From Oculina patagonica (lineage: Eukaryota): a stretch of DNA of 64,000 nt. Under the pieces are notes generated by a model. It saw only the letters and a program-made list of their open reading frames with translations, did not search any database and was not told where the DNA came from. Position 1 is the stretch's first letter. Every line of letters begins with the position of its first letter. The stretch is from NCBI RefSeq assembly GCF_052425735.1, contig NC_135758.1:23622001-23686000 (forward strand), in the 5' to 3' direction. Both the position numbers and the translations under genes were made by a program. Below, piece by piece: positions 34,983 to 60,571 of this stretch.

Positions 34983-37900
34983 ATGGCAACAGCGTTAGAA
35001 GTATATCGTAGACGCTGCGTAGCCCAGGAACGAAAAAAGATCCACGAGTCTTCAGAATACATTTACCCTATGCGCGAAAAAAACAACAGCAAGCCTGCTC
35101 CAAGAAAAACGTCGTACTCAGTAGATTTTGCTAAAAAGGAAGGAAAGCCGGCAAAGCCGAGGCCCTGTTCTGTTACAAGACGGAATCGACCACACCCATC
35201 CCAGGTAAATAGCTTGACTATATTTCGGAAGACAAGACTTTCACACTTGAAATCTTAATTTTTAATATTAATTTTACCAGAAATTCTTCTATTTTGTCCT
35301 TCTCTTTGACCAGAATAACAAGCAGAAAATACATTCAGCAAGTCATGTCGTTAAATGACAAAATTATTTATATGTTTATTTTCTTTTTTTTTTCTTAGAA
35401 TTTCCTAAATTGGAGGATTCCTTCGAAACCGATGCCGGGCCAGAAAAGTAACGAAACTATAAATGCTCTTTTGAATTTATCAGATTTAGAAACAAAAGCA
35501 CGATTCTATGACGACTACGTTGGAAAATTTAGTAAGTATGCGCCAGCTCCCTGCATACAGGAAATTGTTTTTAATGATTACCAGGGATTTCGTTACTTTT
35601 AAGGGACTCGCGCTTTATAAAAGACAACTGTCTAAATGCTCGTGCAAAATGGCGCAATTAAAGGAGCAACATCACGATATTTTAGGTCATTTTTCTGATT
35701 ACTTTAAAATTAAAGGAAACCTCAAAGTAATAATTTTCGGATCAATTTAGGTTTCTGGGAAACTGCTAACCTACCCCTCCCCAAACCTAACATTTTGCCC
35801 AAAGCGATAAGTAAGGGTTAATGTTAGGTTTGGGGAGGGGTAGGTGAGCAGTTTCCCAGAAACCTAAATTGATCCTAATTTTCTAACGAAGAAAAGCAAC
35901 AAAGGAGTAATAAAAACGCGAAAATAAACAAGAATGGTTTTGACTGACGAAGATTGAGACGGATTACGAATGATAAACTTTGAAAAACTTGCCCAATTTT
36001 TTCAAGTTGCGTTGTCCTTGACGTAGCTCCTTTAACTGTAAACTGAGCGATGTACCCGCAAAATGACAAATTTATTGAAAAAACGCATCACGTTTGTTCT
36101 TCAGTTTGCTCGCGGTTAGTTCCACTCCGGTTTGCTTGCGGTTAGTTCCACTTCGGTTTGTTTGCGGTTATCTTTTATTTGTTAGTAAGGGCAGCTCCTT
36201 TTTTAAAAATTGATAGCTGTATTGCTTGCGTAGTACTGCTTTTGGCTACGCCATTTTGCGCGAGCATTTAGACAGTTGTTTTCCCTATATAGCGCGAGTA
36301 ACGAAAAAGGTAACGAAACAGGGCCATTAAGCGCGGGGATGATAGTGCATGATAGTTTATTGGTCAGCAGTTTAGCCAAAGACGGGCTCAATCCAAGATT
36401 TATGGCTGCCGTAAAGGAAATTCTATCGTTCGGTGAAGAAGAAAACCGAAATTTAGATTAATATTTGGACTATAGTGAAGCTGAAAACGAGAAAGTGAGT
36501 GGGAAGAAGAAGAGTAAAAGCAACGTCAAAAGCACAGAAAATATCACTGCCAGAAGCAAGAGATGGCGTGAAAGTATCGAAAACAAGGAAAAAACATGAA
36601 AACATTTCTGCACCGAGTGATAGTGGAGTTGAGAACGAGAAAAGCAAAGAATGAAATGCGCAAGCACATTGCGTGATTTCGACAAACTATCGTCAACTAT
36701 CATGGAGCGTTTGATCGTAAACATGATAGTCAATGTGATAGTGAATGATAGTTGGAAGCAGCGAACTACCATCAACTATCATGACCGTTTGATCCAGGCT
36801 TACCAGTTTAAAATGCAAGCGCGAGACAAGGTGATGTGACGTTCTAAAAATAGCATTTAAAAATATGTGAAAATAACTTACATTGTCCATACAATTTCCT
36901 TTCGATACCAGGATTGTCAAACAAAATGCTAGCTTCTCATAAAAAAAATTCGTTTTCATTACTCGCGCTCAGCAAGTACGTTCTCTGTTCTTGTGATGTC
37001 ACGCGCTAGCCCATGACACTATCCCTACTCAGGTCTTCAAATTACATACTTTAAAATACGTATTTCATAATTTATGTCATCCTGACAGCTTTTGGAAGTG
37101 GCATGGAGAACTGGGAAGAAATTTGCCACAATGTTAGAAGAGCGTCACCGTATTCAGCATTCCACACCAAGATATTTTTAAAAGTCAAAAGGCCCGGCCA
37201 AACGATCGCAAAATTTTTAATGAACATTAAAATGCGCGCGCCCTAAAATGATTCACAGTGACACGTGCATGTTGACCGGGCGGTTTTTCCAGACCGGCGC
37301 ATATCAACCCTTGCATTTTTATCACGTCAACTTGCGGTGATGATTCCAAAAAAAAAACGCGCGTGTTGGGGGTACTGTTAGGAAAATATATGGTTGATGC
37401 GTTTGACTCTGGATCCAGCTGCCCTGGTAGGAGTGCCTCTCTTCATCCTCTCTCCTAGCTCACTCAGTAAAGAAACCTAACAAAATTCTGGGAGCTTACC
37501 TGCGGTGGACTAGCATCCCAGAACTTTTGGCCGCTTCATGCCATGGAAACCGGGATATGCTTCTGAATTGTGGGCCAGTGACATGCTATGTAGGGTAAAA
37601 ATAGTTGCTTTTCCCGAGAAGAACAAGCGCAATACATATACCTTCAGTGTTACCATGTACCTGCATTAAATGAATTCATTGACAAGTTCTTTCGGACGCT
37701 TTCTTTTCTAACAATTCACCCAGTGGCAACGTTATTATTCTTTTTTTTTTTTTTCACAGATTCGAAGAAATGCAACCATTTTCAGAATATCGGCAATCCT
37801 GCGCCTCGTTATACAACAAGTAAGAAAAGTGACCATCCATTAAACATAGGAACCTTTTCACCTGATTACAAATGATTACTGTTTAGGTTCTACTAAATCC

Positions 37901-40900: not shown

Positions 40901-41765
40901 TCCTTCATGGCAATTTCTGATGATTTGGAACACTCCCTCTGGATTTAACTTGATTGCGTTACGTGCAAAGACAAGTCATGTTCAACAATTTGTTTGTTTT
41001 CTTTGCAGATCGTAATATTGCACTCGGGTTCTTAAGCAATCTGAGCAAAAGCACATCTCTCAATCAGGATCAGGCATTAAATCGAAAATCGGCAGATATT
41101 TCCAAGTAAGTTTACATTTATGTAAAGATAAATTAAATCCAAATAATGAAGTGATTTCTAGTATAAGTCGTTCCAACCTTATTTTTAGAGCCCTTTCTTT
41201 TTATTTCTCGAGGTATGAACAGATAGTGCACTGATAGCCTGCGTTGCAGACGAACACGTCCGGCTGCAACGCAGGCTAGAGCACTGGTAGACTGTCCACA
41301 GCCCTCTATTTTTTCGTGTTTTTTCGATCGATGAGCGCGCGGTGAGAACGGCGAGAAAACTGGACGCCAGCGCAAAACGGAAGATGCTTTTTTGCGTTGA
41401 AAAATCGAGAGGCTGTGGACAGTCTAGAGCACTGGGAATGAGGTTGCTTGAAATCCTAGTAAACAAATTGAACCACAAGAAACCACTGAGACTTTGATTG
41501 CCTCTTTTCCAGGGCTGCCCGCGATGTTATCGTCGATCAAGTTCGCCAGATGATGCCAAAAGACGTCCGTACCAGAGAGCGACGCCGGCCAGCTAAATAC
41601 TCACCACCGAGGGGCAGAAAGCTTCGGTTGCCACCAAAGCCTCCCCCGCGAGCCTTCGTCATGAATAAGGGGGCACTGTTCATGCAGCCACACCGCTGTC
41701 TGCCGGGGCATTTTGAAATCCACCCTGAGTTCCAAATAAGTGCCAAAAGAATAACCGTTTCATGA
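34983..41765 (+). CDS. Uncharacterised multi-exon protein-coding gene, head-to-head with NTE
   Basis: Phase-consistent exon chain: 34983-35204 (..RRNRPHPSQ), 35399-35535 (NFLNWRIP..), 36293-~36432, 37760-37819, 39287-39360, 39618-39696, 40094-40149, 40416-40488 (SLENAIQAEAIPAIHRWLK), 41009-41105, 41513-41765 (..GHFEIHPEF..). All have AG/GT boundaries; the 3' end of exon 3 is uncertain. Confidence 0.72.
35662..36031. mobile_element. TTAA-flanked Kolobok-like MITE hosting a nested MITE
   Basis: TTAA|AGGAGCAACATCA ... TGACGTAGCTCCT|TTAA. Confidence 0.7.
35739..35875. mobile_element. Second copy of the 137-bp GG...CC MITE, opposite orientation, 8-bp TSD
   Basis: TAATTTTC duplicated at 35731-38 and 35876-83. 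Confidence 0.88.
38078..39092. mobile_element. Non-autonomous piggyBac-like element
   Basis: TTAA|CCCTTTAACCGGCA ... TGCCGGTTAAAGGG|TTAA. Confidence 0.85.
41235..41278. mobile_element. 44-bp TAG...CTA palindromic mini-element
   Basis: TAGCCTGCGTTGCAG ... CTGCAACGCAGGCTA; flanks GTGCACTGA / GAGCACTGG. Confidence 0.7.
41288..41426. mobile_element. TAG...CTA MITE with perfect 9-bp TSD
   Basis: TAGACTGTCCACAGCC ... GGCTGTGGACAGTCTA; GAGCACTGG at 41279-87 and 41427-35. Confidence 0.85.
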
Positions 41766-42978: not shown

Positions 42979-43424
42979 TCTTTATTTATTTATTTATATT
43001 ATTTAAGGATTCGTACAAGTACAGGTGCTTAACAATAGCCGGGACATAAGTCCCCTACTTGGTTAAAATACCCACACCCAGCCCCCTAAAAAATATCCCG
43101 AAAAACCCCTTCCCTGACCCGACTAAACTACAAATCAAATAAATCTAAATAACACAAATACAATCTGAAATATACTAATCAACTTAACAAGTACAGACAG
43201 AGAAAATATTAACACGGCGACACTTATGGAGCGAGAAAGGGTCTACATTTAGTCTAGCCCTCCTAGCCTTTTCGAGCGCCTATTTTGAAAACCTAACCTG
43301 CCATGAGGTACTCCTTTCTTATTAAAACACGCCAAAATCCCGGTGAGAAAGCCCCCCTTTCTAATCATATCCCCCAGCTTTCTGTTTCTTTGACATGGGA
43401 ATACTTTGATAATTTCTTATGAAT
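42979..43424 (-). mobile_element. 3' remnant of a LINE-like retroelement
   Basis: (TAAA)n-type tail at ~42980-43005 on the minus strand, G/T-rich 3' UTR-like sequence, degenerate reading frame that appears to continue at 53491-53655. Confidence 0.4.
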
Positions 43425-46400
43425 CTAGAAGGAAGACGAGTACGGCTTCCAATAAAACAAAGATTTTCTTAAAAGAACATAAATCTTCGTCGAGATTTCA
43501 ACAGAAAAATGAACAACGTACAATAAAAAGCTGAAAATGAAAGAAATAAAAACAGCTACCCCGAAGTCTTGTTGGTATAACTTTTCGCTTTCTAAGATTT
43601 CCGTACGTAAAAGTTCACGGTCATCTTTTCTTTTTCCTTCAGTAAAAAAAGACAACATTTACGTTTTTGTTCGCGGTTTCCGTTAGGTCGTCAGGGGAGG
43701 GGACGCTATTCCTTTAGACTGCTTAAACTTCTTACTAAAAAGGAAAGTTGGTTCTTTTATTCAAAAGAAAAACAAAAAAAATCATACACTGTACTTGAAC
43801 TCTTTTTCTCTAAAACGCTGTTGTCTCAAATGGAAAACTAGTGTTTCAATTACAGAAACCAATGAAATGCTGCAGCGAAAAACACGTGCGATGAATTAAA
43901 CCAATCAGAAGGCGGTATTTGGCCGACCGCGTTGAATGCAAAAAAGAGGCGCGAAGTTTTAATTTATTCTTCTTCTGCACAAAGTTGTGACCAAAATGAA
44001 AAATTTTAGCCGACTAAAATTTTTCAGGATTATACGCCAGAACTTTGTGTTTGCCTTCTTATACATAACCAGGCAAATTAAAACATTACAGAAGAGCTCC
44101 AACAAAGGAATAAAGCTTGGAAATAACGCGGTAAGTGCGAGAACTAGTACGCTGTTCATTTTGAATTTTAACAATTTGCGAGAATCGAGTTCATGCTTGC
44201 TCCTATCTTGTGAGCTTAATAACTGAATAAATAATTGCCTAACTTGTCTAACTACTTTGTGAATTTCATCAGTTTTCTTTTTTTTTTGTTCACAGAAATA
44301 AACCACAGCTACGGAGGACATTATTTATCTTTAAGGCGAACCGAGCAATTGATTCTGTCCGGTGAAAGCTTTAATCAAAAATTCGACATGGCGAACTTTG
44401 TTCGATTTGGACTAGAAGCTCATGACAGGTTTGTGTTTGAATATTAAAATGTTTGCATTTCAAATAATACTCTTCATGCTTGTGTAGGTTACAAAACAGT
44501 TAGCTGTCGAAATAACGTTCAATAATGAAAACTTCGAGTACTGTGGGCCTAAATAAGTCGGCCGCTTTATATGCGAACGGATAAACATGGCGGAAATTGC
44601 GAGTTTATAGAAATTCTAAGTCAAGTGTTTGTTTTATAACTAGGAGTTGCTGATAGCAAGTAAAGTGCTGCGAAGTAAGTTATAAGAATAATTATAGTAG
44701 TAGGAACGAACGGAAGGTCATAGCAATGTTTCGGATGTTCACATTTCCAGATGTGAAAGATTTTTCTCTGTTTTCTCAGTGAGTTAAATGCTGGTAATTC
44801 GCTTAGTTTATATAATAATTAGTGAAATTGAGGAAAGGAAGCAATGTAACATAACATAGCACGTGCGATTGCAAAGCCATCAGAAACACCAATTCAGTTA
44901 TGACGTCAAAAAGCTCAAAGCTCGTTCCATTCCAGCGCGCGGTCATTATGGAAACGTTTTCGTGGAGCCTTCGCAAATAATCTTCGTAGTGTTTTTGCTG
45001 TACATATTTCCCGCTTAAGGGTCAGAAAGTAAAAATTTTTCCTTAAATTAAATTGGTAATGAATAATTATGAAAGCGATTATAAGAAGGCCTCGGAAATT
45101 CGTTATTCATCAGAGCTGGCGCATAAGGGATGAAAAGACCGTTTCTCCGGCACTTTACTTGACCATCTTGCTCAAGAGAGATTTCTTGGGAAGCATTTAC
45201 AAAGTGCTGCACAGAAGCGCAAGCGGCAACGCTTTAAAATTTAACTTCTTGCTCTTTAGCGAAAAGGACATCGCAAATTAACGACAAACGCAGCTTCGAC
45301 AGAGCGCAAAAACGGCTGATTGGTCAGAGAAAAATGACGCCAGTGAGGTTATTTTCCTTTACTGCGACTGCGCGTAAGATTTTCCAGTTGAGAATTTTAC
45401 ATCATGGCGGATCGAGCGAAGCGCCGCGTGTAAGGGAAACCATGGATAGTAAACAAAAACCTAAGTGAACTGTGGTCCAGAAAAAACCCCTACAGCAATT
45501 GTTTCACAACGACGAAATTTCAAGCAGATTTGCCACCAAGGAAAACTGCAATTACTGTTTTATTTCTGTTATTTTTGACCGTTGTGTATTCTGTTGATGT
45601 GGAGAGTTAGGCCGCCTTGTGACCTGCAGACTTTACTACAACCGTTATGTTTACACGGAAAACTTGGTTGATTCACTGGTGGAATCTCTGACTGTGTTGT
45701 TTCCTCTCCAGCTGGCTTTTGACCGACGTTAGCGAATTTTGGAAACAGCTGTCGCGGACGGTCTTGCTTTAGGGAGCGAACACGTGTTTTAAATTCTGAT
45801 TGCAACTGGTGCACTTTGTTTTGGTGAGATTCATTGCCTCCCTCATCGCAACTGTCCTCAAGGTTTGTTGATATATCATCGTTTCCATCGTCGTCATCGT
45901 CGTTACCATCGTCGCTGTCATCGCTATCCAGTGGATCGCCCGCAAGATACCTATTAACGGATTAAGAAATCAAACCAAATTTAGGCTCCATGCGTGCAGG
46001 GAAAAGTACAGTAGCTTGTGCTTATATTTTGACCGTACTCTCTTACCTGTTCAATGTTGTGGATAGCTCTCGTATTCGTTCTTGTAGCAGAGGATGGCAG
46101 ATAGGGCACAGTCGTTCTCTGAGGCATGATATATGGAATGAGTGACCACAATTCAGCCTTTTGTAATCAGCTGAATTGGCCGTGCATTCGGTGAGATCAC
46201 AACAAACCATCTGGTCGGGCTCAGAACCTAGAAAAGAGAACCCCATCGGCAGCGATCGCTGGTCCATGGTTGCATCCAATGCTGGGAAGTAATATGGCTG
46301 GAAAATGAAGGTAAGCTAAGATGTAAGTGTAGGATTGACCCGAGCTTCTCTTGCATATAAAAGAATACAAGCACCACTATAATATCCTCAGCTACATGAA

Positions 46401-49400
46401 TCTTATCTCGGCTTTTTTTGCAAATGATTGATTTCTGAAAGACAGGCTCCACAGTTGTTTTGTTATATTTATAATTTTAATATTTATTTAACGTTTTCAG
46501 TTATCCTTTGTTTATAATTTGGTAGTGCGTGTAAAAAGAATAACGTGTACATGTACTTCAATCGTATCATTTTTTTAAGTCCATCCCTGAATTGAGGTGA
46601 ATTTCTCTTGCAGTTCCCTTGTCTGAATGAACTTTATTCAAGGTAGCAAGGCATTTGATAAAAAAAATGCATAGCACCTGAAATTTGCGGTTTCCACGTG
46701 GGATCTTTGCTGTCTGTCCAAGTGTATTCCACACTTCTGTGAACAGTTCAAAAAGGAACTCTGCTGCCTTGAGTGTTGTCTCTGTGAGGTTTGCACTGCC
46801 ATGCCCTCTCAGATATTGTGGCAGAAACCATTCCATAAAATCTACGTCAAAGCCTCTTCCACTGAGTGCATGTGCTATTGTGCGGATCAGTTGTGGAACT
46901 GCCCAGATAGGTACGTTACTGTATAAAGGTAACCAGAAGTGTGTGTTTTGTGAGTTGTTACACTATAAATAATTATTGGTAAAATATAAGGATCTAACTC
47001 TTTTGTAATTTTTATTATGTAAGTTTTTGACAAGGACAAAATTATTAAACATGTTATTGTACCGCAAATCTATAGAAGCAATAATAATTAACATCACTGT
47101 TACGCTGATAATTATTCGTTATTTGCTGAGTCAAGTGGCATGAATGCTGTGAAGCCATTATTTCATAAGTGTAAGTACAAACTCTGTTATCTTGCAAGTT
47201 TTGTTATTGCGTGTCACAGAATCATAAATTTAGCTATAAAATTTTTTACTGTTAAAATAAGAAAACAGCCAAAGTATTTCTGAGATGTCTTTTAATTGAA
47301 TCGTGTGGAGAAGAAATCAAACAGACGTGAGATTGCTAAACTGTAAGCAGTAACAGTAATGAGTTTGTAGTTTTTTGTTTTGCTCATGTGTCCGTGCTCT
47401 CCAATGGAATTGCATTGATCATAACACAAGAAACATTTCCAAAATAATTATGAATATAGTTGAAAATTTTCCTACCGCCGCAAGATGGAGTGAAGTATTT
47501 CAATTTTTTTCTCTGTGAAAACTTGTAGGAATTCTTGGATTGTTTCACCAAGGTCTGTGTTTTGGGACACATGGAACAGGAGATCACTTAGTTGGCATAA
47601 GGTTGCCTTATCATAGTTTCTGCGGCGGAAGATAATGAAGATCATAGATGCCCTTAGCATTGACTGTAACCAGCTGTCAAAATTTCCACCACGAAAGAAC
47701 ACAGTGTAGAAGTAGAAGTTGAAGCAGCTGATCTCATCAAGTAAGTTGATCAACATCAGGTACTGTGCATCTTTCCATTCACCAAATAGATCCAGAACAA
47801 CATCTCTCACTATAAGCCAGCCTCCAAAGGCAGCTGAAGACACCAGAGAAATTTTTTCAGACTTAGGCTTCTGGGGGAACTTCTTGTTTCTAAAAATTTT
47901 AAAATATGCAATTTTAATCAATTCTTGCGAGTACTTGTAGGTTCTATATCTATTTCATAGATGTCAGTTTATTGGCTTCCTTCGCTCGTGTAGTTACATG
48001 TAAGAAAGACACAAACTGGTATTTGTTAAATTATAAATTAACCAACCTTCCAAATAAAGCTTTATATAACTTCTCAAAGAAAGGCCAGAACACTTGAACA
48101 GTGGATTCCTTTGTGTTAAGGGAGATAGTTGTTTGTTCTCACTATTGTGTTTTTAGTGTAGCAATTATTTATTTTTGCATGTACTTAGCTACCTCTGCAA
48201 CAAGTTTTTTATTGAACTTCCAGGTTGGGTAGTCACCAGTTACAACCAGTTGGAATTCAGCCATGTATTCATCAAGTTCAGGGCACATCATGAGTGTGTG
48301 TTCCAAGGCTGCTGCATAATCATTTTTGCTGTGGAGAGGCCTTTCAAACTCATCAACCAGCCATGATGTTTTCAGCGTCTCCATTTCATGTCTCTCTGCA
48401 TCCCAATACACCCTTTCAAAATCACAAGCACATTGGTTTAAGCACATACAGCTGTACATGTAGGTAGTTATGTTGGAAGTTCTGTTATTTTTTCAGTTAT
48501 GCTTTGTTTGGATTTTTTTGCATAATGTACTACTGTATATAGAAAACTCCAAGTAAAATCAGCTGAGTTCTAAATTTAGTATGGAAATTCAATATCGTTA
48601 TTTTTACACCAGCATTTACGCATACATACATATATTAGCCTGGGACGGATGAAAAATTCATGTAAGTTTTCTGAAAAACTGCAATCTGAGTGCAGTTGTG
48701 CTTGTGGCAAGAATTAGACAGCAGTGAGCTGCTTTGTATGAATAAAATAATTTATATCACTGTAATACCTGAGATTCTGAAAGCTATCCTGGATATTTGA
48801 AAAATTGACCTGTGTATATTCTGCAGGTAACAGAGACAGGAAGCTGGAGGAAAAATATTTTGTTAACTCTACACGAAAATATCCTAGCAGATGCTGGATG
48901 TCGATTCCTCCACGACACTGTCGAATCGATCCATCCTTCATCGCCACTCTCACAGACTGGTGGTTTCTGTTAATGTCGTGGTTCTGGGGAACAGCATTGA
49001 TGTCAGTGTGGATATCTGCTAGAACTGTGCACATGTGCCAGGATGTACTGGTTATGGAGTTTGTCGGCCTTCTCGGTGCATGTATAAAGTGGATGTCATC
49101 CTCAATGAGAAGTATGAATTTCTTTTCCTTTCAAAACAAAACATTTTTATTATATATAATATGATTAAATCCTAACCACCCTGGAAAATAAATGAGCACA
49201 GTGACCTGAAACACTAGTTCCCCATTCAGATTACTGGGGTTCCCAATATTTTAATCTCACTGGTCTTATATTTACTAAAATGCCCGTCCATTTTACACAA
49301 AAACTAGTGCGGTTGCCCCCATTTTTTATTCCATTTTTCTAATGCTCATAACATAATTGTAACCTGGACCAAGTTTCAGAAAATTTTTAGTTCTCCTTCT

Positions 49401-52400
49401 ATTTCAGTGGAAACACCTTAAACAATACATTAGGTTTTGAAGAACGAAAATTGCACAGTCAACAAAGTTGAAAGTTCTTAGTCGGAAAGTGTAGTTTTGT
49501 CATAATGCTGATATCCGATTTCGAATTTTCCAACAACTGTTTGCAGTCAGATGAAGTAATCATTGTCGTGAACCATGTTTAACAAAACAACACAATACAT
49601 GTACATGTAGTGGCTCAGTAATTATTGTATTAGCTGTTGTAGAATTTGGAGGTACAATAGGAAAGAGTTTTATTGAATTGTGAACTTCATAGACTCAATT
49701 TATCAAGCACAGCTACCTTTGTTGCAAGTTTTATTTCTTTTCTCACTTCTTCTTGATTCATTTTGGCAAGTGCTTTCTCATGGTTCGTAATGGAATGTGG
49801 ATGGCAACTGTAACCAAGGACCATGCCAGACATCATTGAGGAGTAGCTAGCTCCACTTAGTTTTAGTTGTAGACCATTGGCTTTCTGCATGGGACAGTTT
49901 TTCTGACAATCAAACATTATCAGAAATATACAAGTTATTGTGTGAGCATTATAATTGCTAAGTGTAATGCTTTTTTTCCTGATGCAGTGGAATAAATTTT
50001 AAGAGTAGTGGATATAACCAGCTCCACCCTTTCTTGTTTGATATTTTTTTAATTCTAACAAGAGAGAGAAAAGTTCTTAATTATAATGTTATTTTTTTTA
50101 TTTTTATTGTATATGTACCCCAATATTTTTTCCTTTTTATTGGAAATGGTTGAATGCCTTTATTTTATCTGCTTTGTTTGAAGGTAGAAAGGTCTACTAC
50201 CTGATTTCTAAAGAAACTGAGGTTGTGTAGCAAGGCAACTACACGGATTCTCTGAAGATGACTTCTCTTGCTTGATGGTGTTTCCTTTTCATTATTGAAT
50301 ATGGCACAAAAGATGTCCTCAAACAGGCCAGGAGCATGGGTATCACAAAACTGTTCCATCTCATCTGGATTGTATAAATGTTTCCCACCATTGCTATAAT
50401 GATTGACCAAAGACTTGTGGAATTGTTGCACAAGAGTGCTGAATGTTGTGTCTCCTTTAAGCAGTGAGAAATATTTGTTAGAAAACAAAAAGGATGAAAA
50501 CATGTTTCTCAGCTATCATACACTTACAACATGAATGGTTTTGCCCTTGGAAGTTGAAGTAACTTCAGATTATTATGACCACTTCCCTAATGACAAATTC
50601 AGACCTTTGGGAGGGTTGCATGTCTACTTACTGTACTGTGCCTGAAATTAAAATTTTAAAAGGATTTAATGTAAAATAAAACACAGCTTCTTTAAAAATT
50701 AATCAAAATTTTAGGATATTTAATGACAAATTTAGAGGCTGTAAGTTCTTCTCCACTTGGTTCTTATGTACAGTGACTTTTTAATGAAGTGAAATCTATA
50801 ATTTTGCCCAAACCTTTTGTAGGCATACTGGTTTTACCTTGAATTTTCTTGTGAAGCCTGATGTTCTCTTCTTTCAATTCGTCATTTATTTCCCTGATAT
50901 TCTTTTCTTTTTGCATTAATTGTGTGTTTTGTCGAGCAAGTTCTGTTGGAAAATAAATCACCATGGGTTTTATGTAACACACTCTACATGTTTCACGTTA
51001 TGTTTGATTTAAGGGCTGAGCAAAAACAATAGTTTCAAGGTGAATTCAACATAAAATGCTTATGTAAACCCAAGGTGCAGTTGAGATAAACTTTTGAATT
51101 TTTCCAAACTTTCTCTTGTTTTTGCACCAGGCTATATAGATATATGACTCAGTTGATTTTCAGTCTTAATTTAACCAAATATCCAAGTTGATAATAAACT
51201 GTTTATATCATAGGATTGTGTGTTTTAAGTGATCCCATCTGTCAGATCATGAGGGTTTTGCTTGGGTGACTAGAAATAGATTAATATTATGTTGGGATAA
51301 AATAATATGTTAGCCCATTTAATGCAGCTGAAAACATGCTGTATGGCTATACGTCGGTTCCAATTTTAAAATTATTCCTGTCTTCTATTGTACCCTCGTG
51401 AATATAGCATTTTTCCATAGTCGAGTTTGGTATTTTATTAAAACCTTGTTGAAGTAAATTTGTGTGTTGTTTTGTTTTATTATTGACATTGGTAAAAAAT
51501 AATAATAAAAAATATTGACATTGGTTCATGTACACATGCAGTGTTGGACAGTACATACAGCTACTTATATATTTTATTTTTGCTGTTTATCTCATTAAAG
51601 AAGTATATTTTAGCAGTCTAATTTTTAATAGAACCTCATAATTATAAAGGGCATACTATTAGTATGTAAACAATGAGGCAACCATAATGACCTAGGGAAA
51701 GGGACTGTAAATGGAGGTTATTTGTATGGTCATTATCAATTTATTGTAATTTACAGTATTTCACAGACAACTTCAATGTCTAGGAAAGCCAATGAAATGC
51801 TTGGTCACACATACCTTCAATTTTGTTCAACAACATTGTGTTCTTATCTTCTACTTTCCTTTGGCCTTCTTCCAATTTTTTTTTTTTGCCTCTCGAGGTC
51901 TTCAATTTTCTTAACCAGCTCTCCCTGATCAGGGTTATAACTCGTCGACTCAGACTTTGGGCGCTGGTCGAATAAAAAATATTAAAAAACAAAACTATGG
52001 GCGTGACTGGTGATATGCCAATCCTCAGTCAACTATCAACAGTTCTGTGAAATCAATTGACGTAATTAAATACCTTTTTAGGTGGAGTGTATCCCTCGCT
52101 GTTGCAAATTCTTTCATCTCGATCGGCCAGCAATAAATGTTTCTCACAAATAAATGTACCGATGTGGGAATGGTGTTGAAAACTATCAAACACCGCAAAT
52201 AGTCGCCGAGGACAGGAAACAAAACTACCGCTGCATTCATTGTCAGAATGCAGTGGAAAGCAACATTTCAATTTGTTTTCATTAATTTTTTCGTCGAAGT
52301 GCTTTTTACAAAGCGTCACATTCTGTAAAAAACCACAGGCCCGTGCTTGAATGTCTGTAAACAGGGACACATTACCCCAACAGTCGACCCCAGCCGGCTT

Positions 52401-53488
52401 CTTACGCAATTCTCGGGGAGCTTTAACACAGTGCATAGTGCTGCATATTCATAAAAAAATAAAATAAAAATAAAAAATCCCCGACACTATTGCACATTGG
52501 CAACAACGATAATTGACCTTGACAGGACGATTTGTAGCCGCGGTTTGGGCGGGAAAATATGGCGTGTGCAAGTCTTGGCAAACCACACAGAAAGACAAGA
52601 TAATGGAAGTATTACGACGACTTCAGTAAAATGAACAAAATCTTTAATTCAATAATACTCCTTAGAAATTACAAAACTTTCAACGACTAAAATCTACGTA
52701 CACAACAAGATAAGTCCTAAATGATCAACTGCGTAATATTCCTACGATCCGAGGAGTTAGAAAACAATCGCGTAAAAACAAAACAATTCACGATTTCGTA
52801 CTCACTGAACTGCAATCTCGGCGGGCAAGAAACCTTTTCTCTCTTTCTACAACAATCGCCACATCACAGCAGAAGTCCTCCTTTAAACAGCGTTTATAAA
52901 AATTCATATAAACGAAAAAAAAGTCATTTTTGATATGTTTTAGAGAAATTAGTCCTCTCAAACATTTGCCTTTCCTGAGCTTACTGAGTAAGCGGTGACC
53001 TTAATAAACGCCAAACACTTGTCCCAACAAAAACAAGAAGCGTAACTTTCGCCTCAAAAGTGAGTCACAAATGGCAGCCTTTTTATGCCAGAACTTTTTC
53101 GTCGATGTCTTCACAAATAGCCTAGATGCGTCCTCCATGAACAACAGCTGTTTGTGATGCGACTGCAAATAGTGATGGACGGAGAACAGCGGCGCTTTGA
53201 ACGCTCAATGACGTGTTCTTTTTTGATTCGCTGTCCGCCATTTTGAAAATCGAATGGCGGGAGTCATGGCGCGGGCAGCATTTGACGCACACTGCGCATG
53301 TCCAGCCGTTTTTGCGCTCTGTCCGCAGCTTCCACATTTTACATGCCGCTGATCATACGTACTGCATGTACTCAAAATCATCGCCAGTGAAAAAGTCGAA
53401 AATCGAGTGTGTCGCATATATAAAGCGCCCAGGCCCCACGCGGACAGTCACAAATAGTGGTGCTGCTACGCTAAGGCTTCGCAGCAAT
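43425..53488 (-). mobile_element. ~10 kb putative DNA transposon carrying an Academ/DUF6589-like DDE gene; no TIRs seen
   Basis: Starts with CTAG at 43425 and ends just after the hairpin TGCTGC-N14-GCAGCA (53461-53486). Possible 3-bp AAT duplication (43422-24 / 53489-91). The flanks look like one interrupted LINE-like remnant. Contains the spliced gene below. Confidence 0.6.
45569..52436 (-). pseudogene. Multi-exon DDE-transposase-like gene (Academ/DUF6589-like) with N-terminal Cys/His domain, coiled coil, RING-like finger, acidic tract and C-terminal C2H2 finger; probably defective
   Basis: Exons: ~52074-52436 (Cys/His-rich), ~51815-51965 and ~50820-50943 (coiled coil), ~50200-50458 (..LHNLSFFRNQ), ~49715-49885, ~48770-49127 (LIEDDIHFIHAPRRP..HMCT), ~48192-48412 (LVDEFERPLHSKNDY..VVTGDYPTW), ~48045-48127 (ISLNTKES..FWPFFEKLY), ~47475-47890 (FRGGNF..FRRRNYDKA..EKKIEILHSILRR), ~46680-46915, ~46047-46290 (CD..C..CGHSFHISC..CPIC), ~45569-45950 (D-rich tract; CKHNGC..LTLHINRIH). 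There is an in-frame TGA and no intact acceptor before ISLN. Confidence 0.72.
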
Positions 53489-53964
53489 AATTGTTGTATA
53501 TGACTTTTAAAATAATGTTCTGTATCCCAAAATGTATATTCGAATTTAAAAGCTTGAAGGCTACAGTAATCCTGGGCAGGATGTCTTTATATAAGCTTAC
53601 CATCAATGCAAACGCGGCCGGCCGGCTCCATACAATTCCTGTAATCGCATGCCACACTGTTAAATATTTCTCCACTTTGGAGAGCGTTTTTGAAAAGCTC
53701 CGTTTTCGGTGACCGAAAACGCCGTCTCAGTGCGGACAGTTGGCCTATGCGGAGAAAAAGATGCGTTTTCAAATTTACCCGGGTCAGTGTGGACAGGGAC
53801 TAAGTGTACTTTATTTATATTATAAAAAAGATAAATTTACTTACAGTTGGTACAAAATAGATTGCATTCCATACAATGTTTTAAAAATCCAACTTAGTAT
53901 TATTATGAATGTCACTCTACGTGTGTCTTCATAGGCTGATTTTATTACAGATACTCCCATTATA

Positions 53965-54120
53965 CTGTATCACATCACATTACATTACATTACATTAAAT
54001 TACACTTCACTGCAAAAAATAATGAATGAATGAATGAATAATAAATAAATAAATAAATAAATAGATAGATAGATAGATAGTAGTAGTGTGTAGTAGTGGG
54101 ATAAATAAATAAATAAATTA
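53965..54120. repeat. Compound microsatellite (ACATT)n/(GAAT)n/(AAAT)n/(AGAT)n/(TAG)n
   Basis: Directly visible. Confidence 0.85.
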
Positions 54121-54569
54121 TACATAAACATATGTATAAAACCTTAAATACGAGGATGTCACACAGAGTACCCTTATTTTTTATGTTTATGACTAACGTA
54201 GTCCCGGGAGCCCCCGGGCGTAGTCCGTGAGGCGTATTCCAGCCCCACAAGGGATGAATAGGGTTTGTAGAAAGGGTCTGTTCTGGGCGTACTTATGATA
54301 GTCTACCATTTTTAAACATGTTGCTAATCACTTACAAAAGAGGCATGTGGACGCTATAATGAGTTTTGCGTGTATGATACAGCTGATAATACCTAACTGG
54401 CTCCGATAATAACATTCTAAACATCTGTCACCGTGGGTATATCTTGGTGTCACGGAAAATATTGCAAGTTATCTATGATGCTGTGGTTTTGGTATTGTTT
54501 ATTGTTTTTGGAATCCTTTATTTTACGTTATTCGGGGTTCGACCTATAAAACCAAAAACTCTACGTTAG

Positions 54570-55472
54570 TTAGTTTTCCTCGGTTTGTTTGCATAACATA
54601 TGCCTTGCTGTCTTTACAACTGCCGTTCGAAGTTCGCGAAGGCGCCAGCAATACAAAAATGGATTGATGGACGAGTTCATAAATGCTATAGTATCGGTTA
54701 AAATCCACATATTTGTCCAATGATTGGGAGAAATAAATAAGACTGACATGGCAATAAACAGCGGTGTATAACACAGAACCATAACGATATAATATATAAA
54801 GGTGTTTTTTGCACTTTTAGTCGATCGCTGCATGTTCTGATTATTTTCAATATTAAAACTTTCCACAGCCTGTTGTTGAACGTGAATCTGTAACTGGTGC
54901 AGCCGTACTATCCCATAGATTCTGAGGTAACAACCAGTGGAAACTAACAGACAAATAACAATAATTATAGCTGCAGAAAAATAGTAAGCGTACATTTTCC
55001 ACAAAGACAGCAATGATAACAGGAAACTAATGAACCAAAGAACTGCTGATGTATATATTGCTCGGCATGGAGTAATTAAATTCGGATATCGCATATGATA
55101 ATGAAGAGCCAGGAACCGATCCACACTTATGGCTGTCATTATAAGGAGCGACAGGCCAGTTCCAGATGAGGCGGCCATTATGGATAGTGTTCGGTACACT
55201 GGAACATTTTCTGTTAACTTAGAAACAATATAAAGCGGTTGTACGACGAACCCAACTATAAGGTCTGAAACAGCCAGACTGCATAGCAAAACTATGGACG
55301 GCGATCGAAGCGTAGGAGTTCTCAATATGGCGGCTAGCACCAGAGTGTTGCCAATAATGGATATCAGCATTAATGGAGCATTGAGTACGCAGTTAATAAT
55401 GACAAAAGTTTCTGGACGAGAATTATTGCCTCTGATGCCAGCTGAATAATCAGCTTCTGATTCGTTTGGCAT
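54570..55472 (-). CDS. Intronless class-A GPCR (melanocortin/adenosine-receptor-like cnidarian type)
   Basis: 300 aa, 7TM; GN, LAVSDLIVG, DRF, CYTP, NSSINPFLY. Confidence 0.93.
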   Translation of the reverse strand: MPNESEADYSAGIRGNNSRPETFVIINCVLNAPLMLISIIGNTLVLAAILRTPTLRSPSIVLLCSLAVSDLIVGFVVQPLYIVSKLTENVPVYRTLSIMAASSGTGLSLLIMTAISVDRFLALHYHMRYPNLITPCRAIYTSAVLWFISFLLSLLSLWKMYAYYFSAAIIIVICLLVSTGCYLRIYGIVRLHQLQIHVQQQAVESFNIENNQNMQRSTKSAKNTFIYYIVMVLCYTPLFIAMSVLFISPNHWTNMWILTDTIAFMNSSINPFLYCWRLRELRTAVVKTARHMLCKQTEEN

Positions 55473-58400
55473 CCTCGCAGACCCTTCTATTACTCGGTTT
55501 TGTCAAGTGTTTGGTCCAATAGTTCGACAAATTTTATTGATTCTTTACGTCAGTGTGATAACTCAAATAATTTAAAATTCTCGTTAAAGTGAAATAAATC
55601 TGCTGTGAATGAAATGATTGTTATCGGTGGCACAAAGAGACCCAAGTTAGAAAGACATGCACATGCTTCCAGAACTTGCGATCGTCTATTAACGCACTGG
55701 CAATGTGGACTTCTTTAGTCGAATGTGTGTATGTTGATATACAGGAATTGATATCCAAAAGGGTAAACAGACCATGAATCTTTCTTTATTTTAAGAATCT
55801 GTTGCTCACGTTGGTTTTGAAATTGCCAACAGAATGTTGTGTCAACGTTTGGTCCAAAAGCTCGACAAAGACTATTCATAAACCCCCCCAAAATGAAAGG
55901 TTCATATTTGAATGAAAAAAAAAACTCTAGCCTACTGTGCAAAAAGTAATTGTTGACTTGTGGCACAAAGAGGCCTAAAAAAAAATGCGAACTATATGTT
56001 GACAGAACAGCATGGTCGGTGCACGATGACAGGCATGGGATCTATTGATTAAAAATGTTATTAACGGACAAAACAAAAGAACTAATAAATATAAGTTGCT
56101 TATGCCCTTGAACATGTCGTGAGATGGTAATATGCTAGCCAGCTGCAAGGGAACCCTTGCTTTTAATAATGAAAGCTACTTAGTGCAGCATAGGCTGTCT
56201 AAAACGTTTTACACATTTGGCGAGAGATGACGTTCAAATCCCCCTCCCCCCCCCCCCCCGCCCCCCACCCCCACACACACACACACAAAATGTTAGACCG
56301 ATTTGAAACGTTTTCTAAAAGTTTCTAAAAAATTTAAATATTCCATCAGTTAATTTTTAATCAGCTTATTTTCACGTCTGGTAAGCAGTCAGCATTTCTT
56401 TAAAAAATGCGATCTTAAAAACAATAAGTCATTTGGCAATGCAAGTGAAATAAACAGTACGAAAATAAAAAAAAAAAACACCAGCTCTTTTATATATATA
56501 AAAAAAACATAAAAGTAAAACAAAAGAAAGCAATCTTCGCGCAAAATGTGGTATTGAACTTTGCTTATTAAGCAGGAAAATACAGGAAAGCTTCAATTAA
56601 GCTTTACGAACAGTGCATTCATCCCAATTGATGCAACAAGTTAAAAGCGAGGAAAAAATTGCTAATATGCTGACTAGTGATCCCCCCGCCCCCGCTAAAA
56701 ATATGACAAAGTTATTACCAGAAATGGGGAAAACACCGGTTCAAATTTCAGTGTGAATGTCGCGTCAGGAATGTATTAAAGCTTGTTTACCTTATGATCC
56801 CACCATCCTTTTATATCTTACAAAATTTTGGAAAAGATGCCTGGCTGGACTGAACTTAAGAATTTGACTTGATCCAAAAAACGGTAGGAATATTTCACTG
56901 ACTGTATTGATATTTAAAAGACATTTAATAACTCTTGTGGCAAAATTAAAAAAAAAAAAACGTAAAGAGTAAAAAAATAAAAAAATTATTGACTTAAAAA
57001 CAACAACTTAAATGTTTTAACCTTTCCATCAGTAAGTTATCAAAAAAAAAAACTGTCCCAGAGCGTAAAGGGGCTCTTTACAAGTAAATCATAAAGCAAA
57101 GTTTGTTTTCCTCTTGTCCCATTGTTCGAAGTCTTTGAAGACCTCGTCGACGACATTCTGATGTATCTGAAGTCGCTGTGTCGATTTCCGGAAAGAGAAG
57201 GCAATTTCTGTAGAACCCGCCTACAGACAAGACCAAAAACCAGCACATCAAAAGATATTACCGGGCGCAGAGGCAACAGCTCATAACGGTGGCTTTCCTT
57301 GAATAGCGAGGGCGACACAGCGATTTCTAAATCCCACGAATCGTCTAACGATGGTAAGATGCCTTGTAACTTGTCAAAGAAAATCGCAGGAAGCCCGCGA
57401 CTTGTAAACATTTATTATAAATTCGCAAAGTGTAATTATTCCTCGTCCCTAAACAAGAGAAAAAATATCATAGATAGAAACATATGAAGTTTTTTGGTGG
57501 TGGTGGTTGTGAGGGCGTTGGGGCTGAGGGTTGGGGTGGGGGGGGGGGGGGGGGGGGGTTGAAAGTGATTAAGACACCATTTCGCGCTAAATGTGGTAAA
57601 TGTTTATGACAACCTATGCTCCATTTTGTAGCTTTCATTGCGGGCCCAAGAGAGGCCCGCAACCCTAATCTTGACAGTGACAGCGGATTGCGTTTTACGC
57701 GTGCGCGCCACGTTAATAATAGGCGAACAGAAACCGGAAGTTGAAAATTTTGTTCTTCCACTAAGAACGATCGGAACGCGAAAAATGTGTCAATCGCGAT
57801 AGTTTGTCGTAACACCGGAAGAGAAAAATCTCTTCTCCAAGAACGATAAGAATGCGAAAAATGAGTCAATCTCTCAACAGTTTGTCACATAAGATCTACG
57901 CTTCTGTCACATGGAAGATTGCAAACATTACAATTTGTAGACGTTGTTTTATAGGTGCTGCTTTTGAGAAAATTTGCTGTGATTATATCACAGATAAAAC
58001 AGCAGCAAAGCGAATGATTCCAGCAACGGTTATTCTCGAGGAATTCGTTATAACACTGACAACATAGCGAGTTTATCAACCGAGGAAAATCACATCTCAA
58101 TTCACACCACGTGCTCGACTACACTTCACAATCAACTGTCAATCAAAAAACAACTCTGACTGGTTCGCGGCCGGTTCGTAGCAATTATTAAAGCGTGACG
58201 CGTTGCTCGGAATAATTGTCTTTAATTTTGTCCAGTGATTTTTCATTAATCGCGCCACGTTAACAAAAGGCAAGCACAACATAGCGAGTTTACCGACTGA
58301 GAAAAAACACATCTCAGTTCACAACGAGTGCTCGATTACACTTCACAAAACTGTGTAATCAACAACATAGATTGGTTCGCTGCAATAGGAAATGAACATT

Positions 58401-59586
58401 CCTTGCGTGACGCGTTACTCGGAATACCATTGTCTTTTGTCCATTTTAGCATTTATTTATCGACACTGCCATCTAACATTACGCACTCTCGTACCAGTCA
58501 GTGCCTTTCAGTTCTAAGTGCGTCAAGGCCCGCACTTTCTAACCTGTGGTTACCACTAGTTATTTATTGTAAGGGTTTCCTTGCAGTTGGCTAGCATATT
58601 ACCATCTCAAGACATGTTCAACGGCTTTAGGCAGTTGAACATGTTATAGCTATCTTCTTGTACCGTTAATAACACTTTTTTTTTATCAATAGATCCGTAG
58701 GATTCAAACATCTGTCACCGTACACAGCTAATACTCACTTTCTGCACGGTAGGCTTGAGCCATTTCACTTGAATATGGAATTTAAATTTTTCAATTTGAT
58801 GAATAGAGCTTTTGGACTAAACACTGAAACAGCACGTTGTTGTAATTTCAAATCGGGAGAGAGCCTATTCACATAGTCCTGTTTGTACCACACGCCAGCA
58901 GTTGAATACGAAATGTAATTTATTGTTTGGCACAAATTGTGCGCGCGGTGTGTATAAACGCTGTGGATCTAATAATTCATGCCTACAACTGGCTTGTTTT
59001 GGATGCAGCGTGATTTAAAAGTCGCGTACTGCTGAAGTGTCACATTAAAGGCCAATCCTATGCTGTGTTTAGTGTAGCTAGTATTATCAATAGAAAGGCT
59101 CATCAGCACAGCTGGCTAGAATGTTACCATCTTTAGACTATTCGCTGTTTCCAGACAAAAGATGCATGCTGCTATAGTCCTTTGTTTTGCGTGCACAATT
59201 GCTACTTTCTGAATCCGAGGATAACACATGTTACAGGAAATACTTCCCTCAATGGCATGTACACCGTGTTGGATGTCATGAATGTCAACATAATTTTGAT
59301 TTAAGAAGTCCGTATTGCCAGTGCGTTTTAACGTCTATTAAAATAGACGATCGCCAGTTCTGGAAACATTTAATACGTCCTTCTAGCTAAGGCTTCCTTG
59401 TGCCAGAGTGAACAATCATTTCATTCACAGCAGGTTTACTTCATTTTAACTTCACTTTCAACTATTGGAGACGTAGTATTGACATGAAGAATAATATTTG
59501 TCGAGCTGCTTGAGTCTTACTTGACCAAACACTTGTCAAAACCGTGCTAGCTGTGATTTCAGAACGTAATAGAGAAGACTGCAAGG

Positions 59587-60495
59587 ATGGCAAACGAATC
59601 AGAAACTGATTATTTAGCTGGCAGTAGAAGTAATAATTCTAGTCTAGAAACTGTCATCATCATAAACTGCGTACTCAATGCTCCATCAATGCTCATATCC
59701 ATCATTGGCAACATTCTGGTGCTAGCCGCCATATTGAAAACTCCTTCGCTTCGATTGCCGTCCACAGTTTTGCTCTGCAGTCTGGCTTTTTCAGACCTTA
59801 TTGTTGGGTTTGTCGTACAACCGCTTTATATTGTCTCTAAACTAACAGGAAATATCCCAGTGTACAGGGCACTGTCCATAATGGCCTTTTCTGGAACTGG
59901 TCTGTCGCTCCTTATAATGACAGCCATAAGTGTGGACCGGTTCCTGGCTCTTCATTATCATATGCGATATCCGAATTTAATGACTCCACGTCGAGCAATA
60001 TATACATCAGCAGTTCTTTGGTTCATAAGCTTTCTGTTATCACTGCTGTCTTTTTGGAAAATGAATGCTTATTATTTTTCTGCAGCAATAGTTATTGTTA
60101 TTTGTTTGTTAGTTTCCACTGGTTGTTACGTCAGAATCTATGGGATAGTACGACTGCACCAGTTACAGATCCACGTTCAGCAACAGGCTGTGGAAACTTT
60201 TAATATTGAAAACAATCAAAACATGCAGCGATCGACTAAAAGTGCAAAAAACACTTTCATATACTATGTCGTTATGCTTCTGTGTTATACACCACTGTTT
60301 ATTGCCATGTCAGTTTTATTTATTTCCCCTAATCATTGGACAAACATGTGGATCTTAACCGATACTATAGCATTTATGAACTCGTCCATCAATCCGTTTT
60401 TGTATTGCTGGCGCCTTCGCGAACTTCGAACGGCAGTTCTAAACACATCAAGGCAAATGTTCTGCAAACAAACCGAGGAAAACTCACTAACGTAA
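59587..60495 (+). CDS. Intronless class-A GPCR, close paralog of 54570-55472
   Basis: 302 aa, same motifs, long identical stretches with the minus-strand copy. Confidence 0.93.
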   Translation: MANESETDYLAGSRSNNSSLETVIIINCVLNAPSMLISIIGNILVLAAILKTPSLRLPSTVLLCSLAFSDLIVGFVVQPLYIVSKLTGNIPVYRALSIMAFSGTGLSLLIMTAISVDRFLALHYHMRYPNLMTPRRAIYTSAVLWFISFLLSLLSFWKMNAYYFSAAIVIVICLLVSTGCYVRIYGIVRLHQLQIHVQQQAVETFNIENNQNMQRSTKSAKNTFIYYVVMLLCYTPLFIAMSVLFISPNHWTNMWILTDTIAFMNSSINPFLYCWRLRELRTAVLNTSRQMFCKQTEENSLT

Positions 60496-60571
60496 AGATT
60501 TCAGTTTTATAGGTCGATCCCCTTGAGCTGAACTAACAAATCGCATTCACCAAAGTTCCTTTAATTCTTCT

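Follow-up and report, generated by a model that had tools for sequence, protein, structure and literature searches.

A probable cut-and-paste transposon family of scleractinian corals with 21-nt terminal inverted repeats, a 9-bp target-site duplication and a DUF6589-related transposase gene

The DNA analysed here is a stretch of 64,000 nucleotides from the coral Oculina patagonica (contig NC_135758.1, positions 23,622,001 to 23,686,000 of the forward strand), hereafter the window, whose own numbering is used throughout unless another contig is named. Public sequencing runs of corals contain this DNA nearly verbatim. Very probably, a classical cut-and-paste (class II, DDE) transposon family of scleractinian corals has one of its copies at 45298-53323 of this window. 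That copy is bounded by perfect terminal inverted repeats (TIRs) and a 9-bp target-site duplication (TSD) and carries a spliced gene on the minus strand. An earlier reading, made from the sequence alone, had placed a 10-kb element without TIRs at 43425-53488, and had taken it either for a new group of DNA transposons with asymmetric ends or for a Helentron that had captured a DDE gene. The true element is smaller, and the corrected annotation has no TIR-less or Helitron-like DDE element at this locus. The results also give a full anatomy, from the ends, the duplication and the uninterrupted site to the 12-exon gene and its putative catalytic residues, for a family known in public databases by no more than the labels "uncharacterized protein" and "domain of unknown function".

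Ends of the element and its other copies

A repeat search uncovered a perfect 21-nt inverted repeat, GACAGAGCGCAAAAACGGCTG, whose two arms (Table 1) lie inside the interval for which the sequence-only reading had reported no inverted repeats; by our own estimate, chance alone would give about 1.6e-5 such pairs in 12 kb. Immediately outside each arm stands the same 9-mer, CGCAGCTTC, and because the bases beyond it differ on the two sides, the duplication is exactly 9 bp. The strings once proposed as ends, TATTGCTGC-N14-GCAGCA at 53463-53489 and CTAGAAG at 43425-43431, are indeed present, but both are outside the element. Neither kind of signal is rare in the window, where perfect 6-bp-stem hairpins (loop 3-20 nt) start once per 103 nt and CTAG occurs once per 582 nt.

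Other copies of the family were retrieved through proteins homologous to exon 6 of the gene. The nucleotide similarity of copies L001-L004 to the window begins and ends precisely at the TIR, and the same terminus is seen at nine aligned ends of five copies. Such an alignment of copies, which the sequence-only reading had named as the way to define its termini and TSD, thus puts the limits of the shared sequence at the internal TIRs, 165 nt and 1.9 kb inside the ends that had been proposed, with a TSD of 9 bp. Neither flank (43000-45297 and 53324-54500) has a match at any of the other loci. Five full copies (the window copy, L001, L002, L004 and L034) have a perfect 9-bp TSD, different in each. 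In addition, an exact scan for the TIR among JGI metagenome contigs located 55 ends in 49 contigs; their 47 distinct outside flanks have no target consensus.

Contigs from four public runs were mapped onto 47950-53900 for junctions and depth. In three of these runs (X3, X8 and X14) there are contigs that extend rightward from 53324 with a single CGCAGCTTC, as expected of an uninterrupted site. The sequence that precedes 53324 in these contigs, TTTAGCGAAAAGGACATCGCAAACGACAAA, is the left flank of the window (45255-45288) except for a 4-nt indel. The empty-site junction, searched for as an exact string in the JGI metagenomes, had no match. Across the element the read-contig depth stays level, at values like those of single-copy DNA (about 58, 25 and 67). 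To the right of the transposon, at 53400-53900, it rises to 20-400 times single-copy in the four runs, with many rearranged joints; from this jump, which begins at about 53400, it follows that the hairpin at 53463-53489 is part of a high-copy repeat unrelated to the element.

That the family has moved recently in reef-building corals is suggested by three observations: its ends are perfect, several samples contain near-identical copies that are mostly intact, and a short deletion derivative exists. Recent activity of this kind is relevant to coral genome annotation and to insertion-polymorphism markers. The derivative (L051, 632-2125) was met in the metagenome scan; it is a 1.5-kb internally deleted form that keeps both ends and lies in a GAC microsatellite, and it is evidence that short non-autonomous derivatives exist. 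At the other extreme, L002 contains at 14540-15949 a nested transposase gene of the pogo/Tc5 type (BrkDBD, HTH_Tnp_Tc5 and DDE_1 domains), an insertion that explains its length of 15.4 kb. Two other interpretations of the terminal regions, the 21-nt repeat as a duplicated promoter and 45405 as the first exon of a host gene on the plus strand, were dropped after TSDs had been found in other copies. A block just inside the 5' TIR is shared by the 5' ends of several copies (Table 1); its position and motif suggest that it is probably a promoter.

The transposase gene and its product

Between about 45.5 and 52.4 kb, a series of stop-free segments on the minus strand forms one gene. A model of 12 exons was derived from homologues and splice-site logic (Table 1), and all 12 have AG/GT boundaries with consistent phases. 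The spliced gene seen in the sequence-only reading is therefore borne out, with its motifs LIEDD, TGDYPT and EKKIEILHS in exons 6, 7 and 9, respectively.

The window copy itself is damaged at two places. The public contig L005, which is 99.75% identical, carries 282 nt that are missing from the window; their loss costs intron 7 219 nt and exon 8 its first 21 codons, among them those of the invariant GP[LF]HxxLN motif, and all four runs break at 48123-48125. Furthermore, exon 2 is put out of frame by a run of 12 A residues. In copies L001-L004 the exon stays in one frame, and in another public contig, L006 (99.85% identical), the run is 11 A residues long and in frame. Near-identical contigs of other samples are free of both lesions. 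When both stretches are restored from L005 and L006, the reading frame is 3063 nt, or 1020 amino acids. Judged from its sequence as given, the window copy encodes no complete enzyme; its ends are intact, and it could be moved by a transposase supplied from intact copies. Damage is also found in further copies, with stops in L003 and a frameshift in L001.

Exon 9 alone retrieves 319 relatives among 1.8 billion representative proteins. The full-length relatives (750-1300 amino acids) come from the sponge Oscarella, amphioxus, Lingula and Ptychodera, and all are called "uncharacterized". An alignment of 38 relatives (A2, with residues numbered as in P0079) contains four conserved motifs: IDDxxxxH (D340 in 25 of 25 and D341 in 24 of 25 sequences), GDWP or GDYP (D501 in 31 of 34), GP[LF]HxxLN (G530, H533, L536 and N537, each in 34 of 34) and VExxHSxxR (E690 and H693, each in all 38). 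In an AlphaFold model of a 943-residue sponge relative (pLDDT 80.9, pTM 0.74), the IDD motif lies on strand beta-1, the Asp of GDYP/GDWP is at the end of a beta strand, and the Glu is on the helix that follows a long, all-helical insertion (531-686) into the beta-alpha core. In the window, the helical insertion domain is encoded by exon 9, which also holds the FRGGNF..FRRRNYDK segment that had been read as helical from the sequence. Together with the fold matches, in which hAT and P structures score above ISCth4, the conserved D340/D341, D501 and E690 support the earlier suggestion of an RNase-H-like DDE fold; the gene product is thus predicted to be an RNase-H-like DDE enzyme with a helical insertion domain. 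Pfam found no core-domain match in single exon pieces, a language-model search from one exon returned only noise, and a sequence search of solved structures returned only coiled-coil matches. A profile search with A2 of a 5.8-billion-protein database returned just two sponge proteins, probably because words from the coiled coil swamped the candidates.

The core is flanked by accessory regions. The N-terminal 120 residues contain two Cys/His modules that are conserved from corals to amphioxus. This Cys-rich domain matches no Pfam family, and a model of it (pLDDT 67.5) has no meaningful fold match, leaving a THAP- or BED-like nature unproven. Toward the C-terminus there is a RING-like finger, which in the window scores below the cut-offs of the Pfam RING models (E 0.0035); 7 of the 38 relatives match RING models, and relatives in the AlphaFold DB are named RING-type. 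The RING-like finger is followed by a C2H2 finger (zf-C2H2, E 0.0028, below the cut-off). In one intronless relative from an ENA contig (P0149, 1074 amino acids), residues 991-1050, after the RING region, have a weak match to Herpes_teg_N, the deubiquitinase domain of herpesvirus tegument proteins (E 0.0005).

These features suggest how the element would move. The Cys-rich N-terminal domain would recognise TIRs of 21-30 bp, and the coiled coil would probably serve in multimerisation. The RNase-H-like core, with the Asp of IDD, the Asp of GDWP/GDYP, the GP[LF]HxxLN motif and the Glu of VExxHS, plus the large helical insertion domain, would cut the ends and join them to a target whose strands are cut 9 bp apart, and repair of this stagger would create the 9-bp duplication. 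The RING-like and C2H2 fingers would then be an accessory module at the C-terminus. The predicted fold, the conserved residues and the duplication are those described above; the chemistry is inferred from the hAT, P and Transib enzymes.

Table 1. Features of the transposon, of its gene and of other full copies; positions of copies L001, L002, L004 and L034 are those of their own contigs
Feature	Position	Strand	Remarks
Whole transposon	45298-53323	-	8026 bp; TIRs and 9-bp TSD; gene on minus strand
5' TIR, GACAGAGCGCAAAAACGGCTG read inward	53303-53323	-	21 of 21 complementary to 45298-45318
3' TIR	45298-45318	+	perfect 21-nt match to the opposite arm
Left TSD copy, CGCAGCTTC	45289-45297	.	9 bp; abuts TIR; identical to 53324-53332
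Right TSD copy, CGCAGCTTC	53324-53332	.	in read contigs of three runs, left flank runs straight into the 9-mer
Conserved 5' subterminal block (GACATGCGCA ... TTCGATTTTCAAAATGGCGGAC ... AACACGTCA)	53180-53302	-	shared by 5' ends of the window copy, L001, L002 and L004; probable promoter
Exon 1	52074-52436	-	start codon; Cys-rich N-terminal domain (two C...C..LCxxH-like modules); aligns with coral, sponge and amphioxus N-termini
Exon 2	51815-51963	-	coiled coil; A12 run at 51876-51887
Exon 3	50838-50942	-	coiled coil
Exon 4	50201-50454	-	from homologues and splice boundaries
Exon 5	49717-49902	-	from homologues and splice boundaries
High-copy repeat in intron 5	49144-49541	.	30-500 times the contig depth found elsewhere in the element
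Exon 6	48769-49127	-	first putative catalytic Asp, LLIEDDIHFIH (LIEDD at 49095-49109)
Exon 7	48193-48412	-	second putative catalytic Asp, TGDYPTW (TGDYPT at about 48228-48245)
Deletion junction	48123-48125	-	282 nt; deletion private to the window sequence; present in contig L005
Exon 8 remnant	48047-48122	-	truncated by the 282-bp deletion
Exon 9	47476-47889	-	helical insertion domain (FRGGNF, FRRRNYDK); putative catalytic Glu (EKKIEILHS)
Exon 10	46678-46918	-	from splice boundaries
Exon 11	46047-46297	-	RING-like finger
Exon 12	45569-45950	-	acidic tract; C2H2 finger; stop codon
Copy L001	6061-13356		TSD CTTCACAAT, perfect 9 bp
Copy L002	4458-19913		TSD CCTCAGACC; enlarged by nested insertions
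Copy L004	6287-13654		TSD GCTTCCTAT; protein only about 54% identical; TIR GACAGGTCTCAAAAAC
Copy L034	720-8655		TSD CTATATAGG; from the JGI metagenome TIR scan

Relations of the family and alternative explanations

By sequence and predicted structure, the core of the transposase is a distant relative of DUF6589 (PF20231), a sister group and not a member as Pfam defines that family. The best Pfam score for DUF6589 is 17.7 bits (E 0.0016), in 1 of the 38 relatives, and falls below the gathering threshold of 27 bits; the exon pieces of the window have no match. The sub-threshold alignment spans the second Asp and the GP[LF]H region. Foldseek against the AlphaFold DB finds proteins with a DUF6589 domain at E values of about 1e-9 to 1e-10 and, ahead of these, unnamed and RING-type entries that match far more strongly (E down to 2e-38). 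The Atlas fold cluster with PF20231 aligns at TM 0.60/0.79, and by language-model features DUF6589 accounts for 72 of the 100 nearest named clusters (score 0.95). The likeness thus lies in the predicted fold, in the language-model features and in the aligned second-Asp/GP[LF]H region, and in this sense the sequence-only reading was right to call the gene DUF6589-like. It had also named uncharacterised proteins of cnidarians and Glomeromycota as relatives, and the fold and protein searches agree: the nearest Atlas clusters are from Mucoromycota, Mollusca and Cnidaria.

The comparison with Academ, the other name attached to the gene by the sequence-only reading, was made through published descriptions and through taxon overlap. 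As described there, AcademH elements have 9-10 bp target duplications and encode a helicase (PMC10045372), and they are large DDE transposons of low copy number found in animals, Basidiomycota, Ascomycota and Mucoromycota (PMC10045372, PMC10799480). AcademX elements are described as having 3-4 bp duplications and an XPG nuclease (PMC10045372), and Academ as a whole as abundant in bivalves and rust fungi and present in Mucoromycota. On these descriptions, the coral family agrees with AcademH in the length of its duplication (9 bp) and in being a large DDE transposon, and the taxon spread of AcademH matches that of the DUF6589 and RING-type neighbours of the coral family. However, AcademH is defined there by its helicase; the coral family has instead RING-like and C2H2 fingers at the C-terminus of its transposase, and neither a helicase gene or domain nor an XPG nuclease was found in any copy examined or in the 38 relatives. 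AcademX, so described, differs in both its XPG nuclease and its 3-4 bp duplication, and it would possibly belong to the same transposase superfamily if DUF6589 is the Academ core.

The family is therefore regarded as probably Academ-like in its working, and it is not filed as a member of Academ. It would at least be a helicase-less, RING-bearing variant beside AcademH, and is possibly a separate lineage. A further and more doubtful step, offered tentatively, would be to see in it a distinct, unnamed lineage beside Academ at the level of a superfamily or deep subfamily, characterised by a DUF6589-related DDE core, a 9-bp TSD, the lack of helicase and XPG, C-terminal RING and C2H2 fingers and, in some members, a tail resembling a herpes-type deubiquitinase. 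Such a lineage would extend over corals, sponges, brachiopods, hemichordates, amphioxus and glomeromycete fungi, and would have been mobile recently in reef corals. If true, this would provide a function for DUF6589-type proteins and a pointer to ubiquitin-linked control of transposition.

Among better-known DDE families, the hAT transposon Hermes and the Drosophila P element both make 8-bp duplications. The coral family differs from them in its 9-bp TSD and has a sequence identity of about 10%; the hAT dimerisation domain (PF05699) has no match in the 38 relatives, and no THAP or GTP-binding domain is matched in the coral family. Transib elements make 5-bp duplications, again different from the 9 bp seen here. 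The finger modules of the coral transposase presumably resemble those of RAG1, in which, however, the fingers are N-terminal, whereas the RING and C2H2 fingers of the coral family are C-terminal. A DDE transposase with such a tail nevertheless recalls RAG1, and offers a testable lead on the recruitment of ubiquitin chemistry.

Several points weigh against the reading of the window copy as a cut-and-paste transposon with a functional transposase gene in the family. Because of the 4-nt indel relative to the left flank, the uninterrupted site may be paralogous rather than an allelic empty site. Four of the six two-ended contigs from short-read metagenomes have flanks that do not match. These contigs are read as assembly chimeras across a repeated element, because one and the same flank is joined to different partners in different contigs (L044/L052/L053); recombination between copies could also explain them. 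A single run labelled "RNA?" contains intron sequence and no intron joints over the region, so that homology and splice-site logic are the basis for both expression and the exon model. The catalytic role of the two Asp residues and the Glu would likewise follow from predicted fold and conservation. Finally, the 282-bp deletion and the extra A of the window copy could be assembly errors rather than real alleles.

Three other explanations were weighed. The one that fares best, although it is improbable, would place the family in the Mutator/MULE superfamily (Rehavkus-like) rather than in a DUF6589/Academ-type group. A 9-bp duplication is typical of such elements and, taken alone, would fit. However, none of the 38 relatives matches the Pfam families MULE (PF10551), SWIM or DBD_Tnp_Mut, the hAT and P structures outscore ISCth4, and the language-model and fold neighbours are DUF6589, with MULE clusters reaching only TM 0.3.

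A second possibility, considerably less probable, is that the gene is a transposase-derived host gene that has been domesticated and is no longer part of a mobile element. Between copies, the exons are 75-88% identical and the introns about 55%, and dN/dS is 0.08-0.14 at a dS of 0.7-1.3. So low a ratio would fit a host gene, as would the fact that relatives are annotated in amphioxus, Lingula and Ptychodera as ordinary uncharacterised proteins, and in a sponge as complete transcripts. The ratio indicates that the coding sequence was under purifying selection while the family diversified, which is also expected of an autonomous transposon lineage. Moreover, domestication would not account for a gene enclosed by perfect TIRs and a TSD, for many copies at different sites (47 distinct flanks), for the existence of an uninterrupted site, for single copies with stops, frameshifts, deletions and nested insertions, or for the 1.5-kb deletion derivative.

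The least likely alternative, that 43425-53488 is a rolling-circle element of the Helitron/Helentron type or a new TIR-less group with a captured DDE gene, has in its favour the 6-bp-stem hairpin and the CTAGAAG string at the proposed ends, and can be dismissed because the copies share conventional TIRs inside that interval, an observation that by the sequence-only reading's own account refutes it, because the right flank is a separate high-copy repeat, and because there are 9-bp TSDs, which Helitrons to our knowledge do not make. Consistent with this, no copy has a Pfam match to Rep/helicase, no Rep-helicase gene lies between the same ends in the copies examined, and the window, L001 and L004 have no long open reading frame besides the DDE gene.

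Other repeats in the window

Several further repeats lie outside the transposon. Two 960-bp arms, 54534-55493 and 59566-60522, are 90% identical and inverted, with about 4 kb between them, and are probably the long terminal inverted repeats of a further transposon. A scan for TSDs picked out the 8-mer TTCGCGAA, but this lies inside the arms and is palindromic and is thus no duplication. A 295-bp direct duplication (7867-8160 and 40943-41236) is 93% identical over copies 33 kb apart, and dispersed 155-bp copies with 85-96% identity are found at 18314-18468 and 35728-35886. At 31362-31723 there is a tandem pair of 178-bp units with 97% identity.

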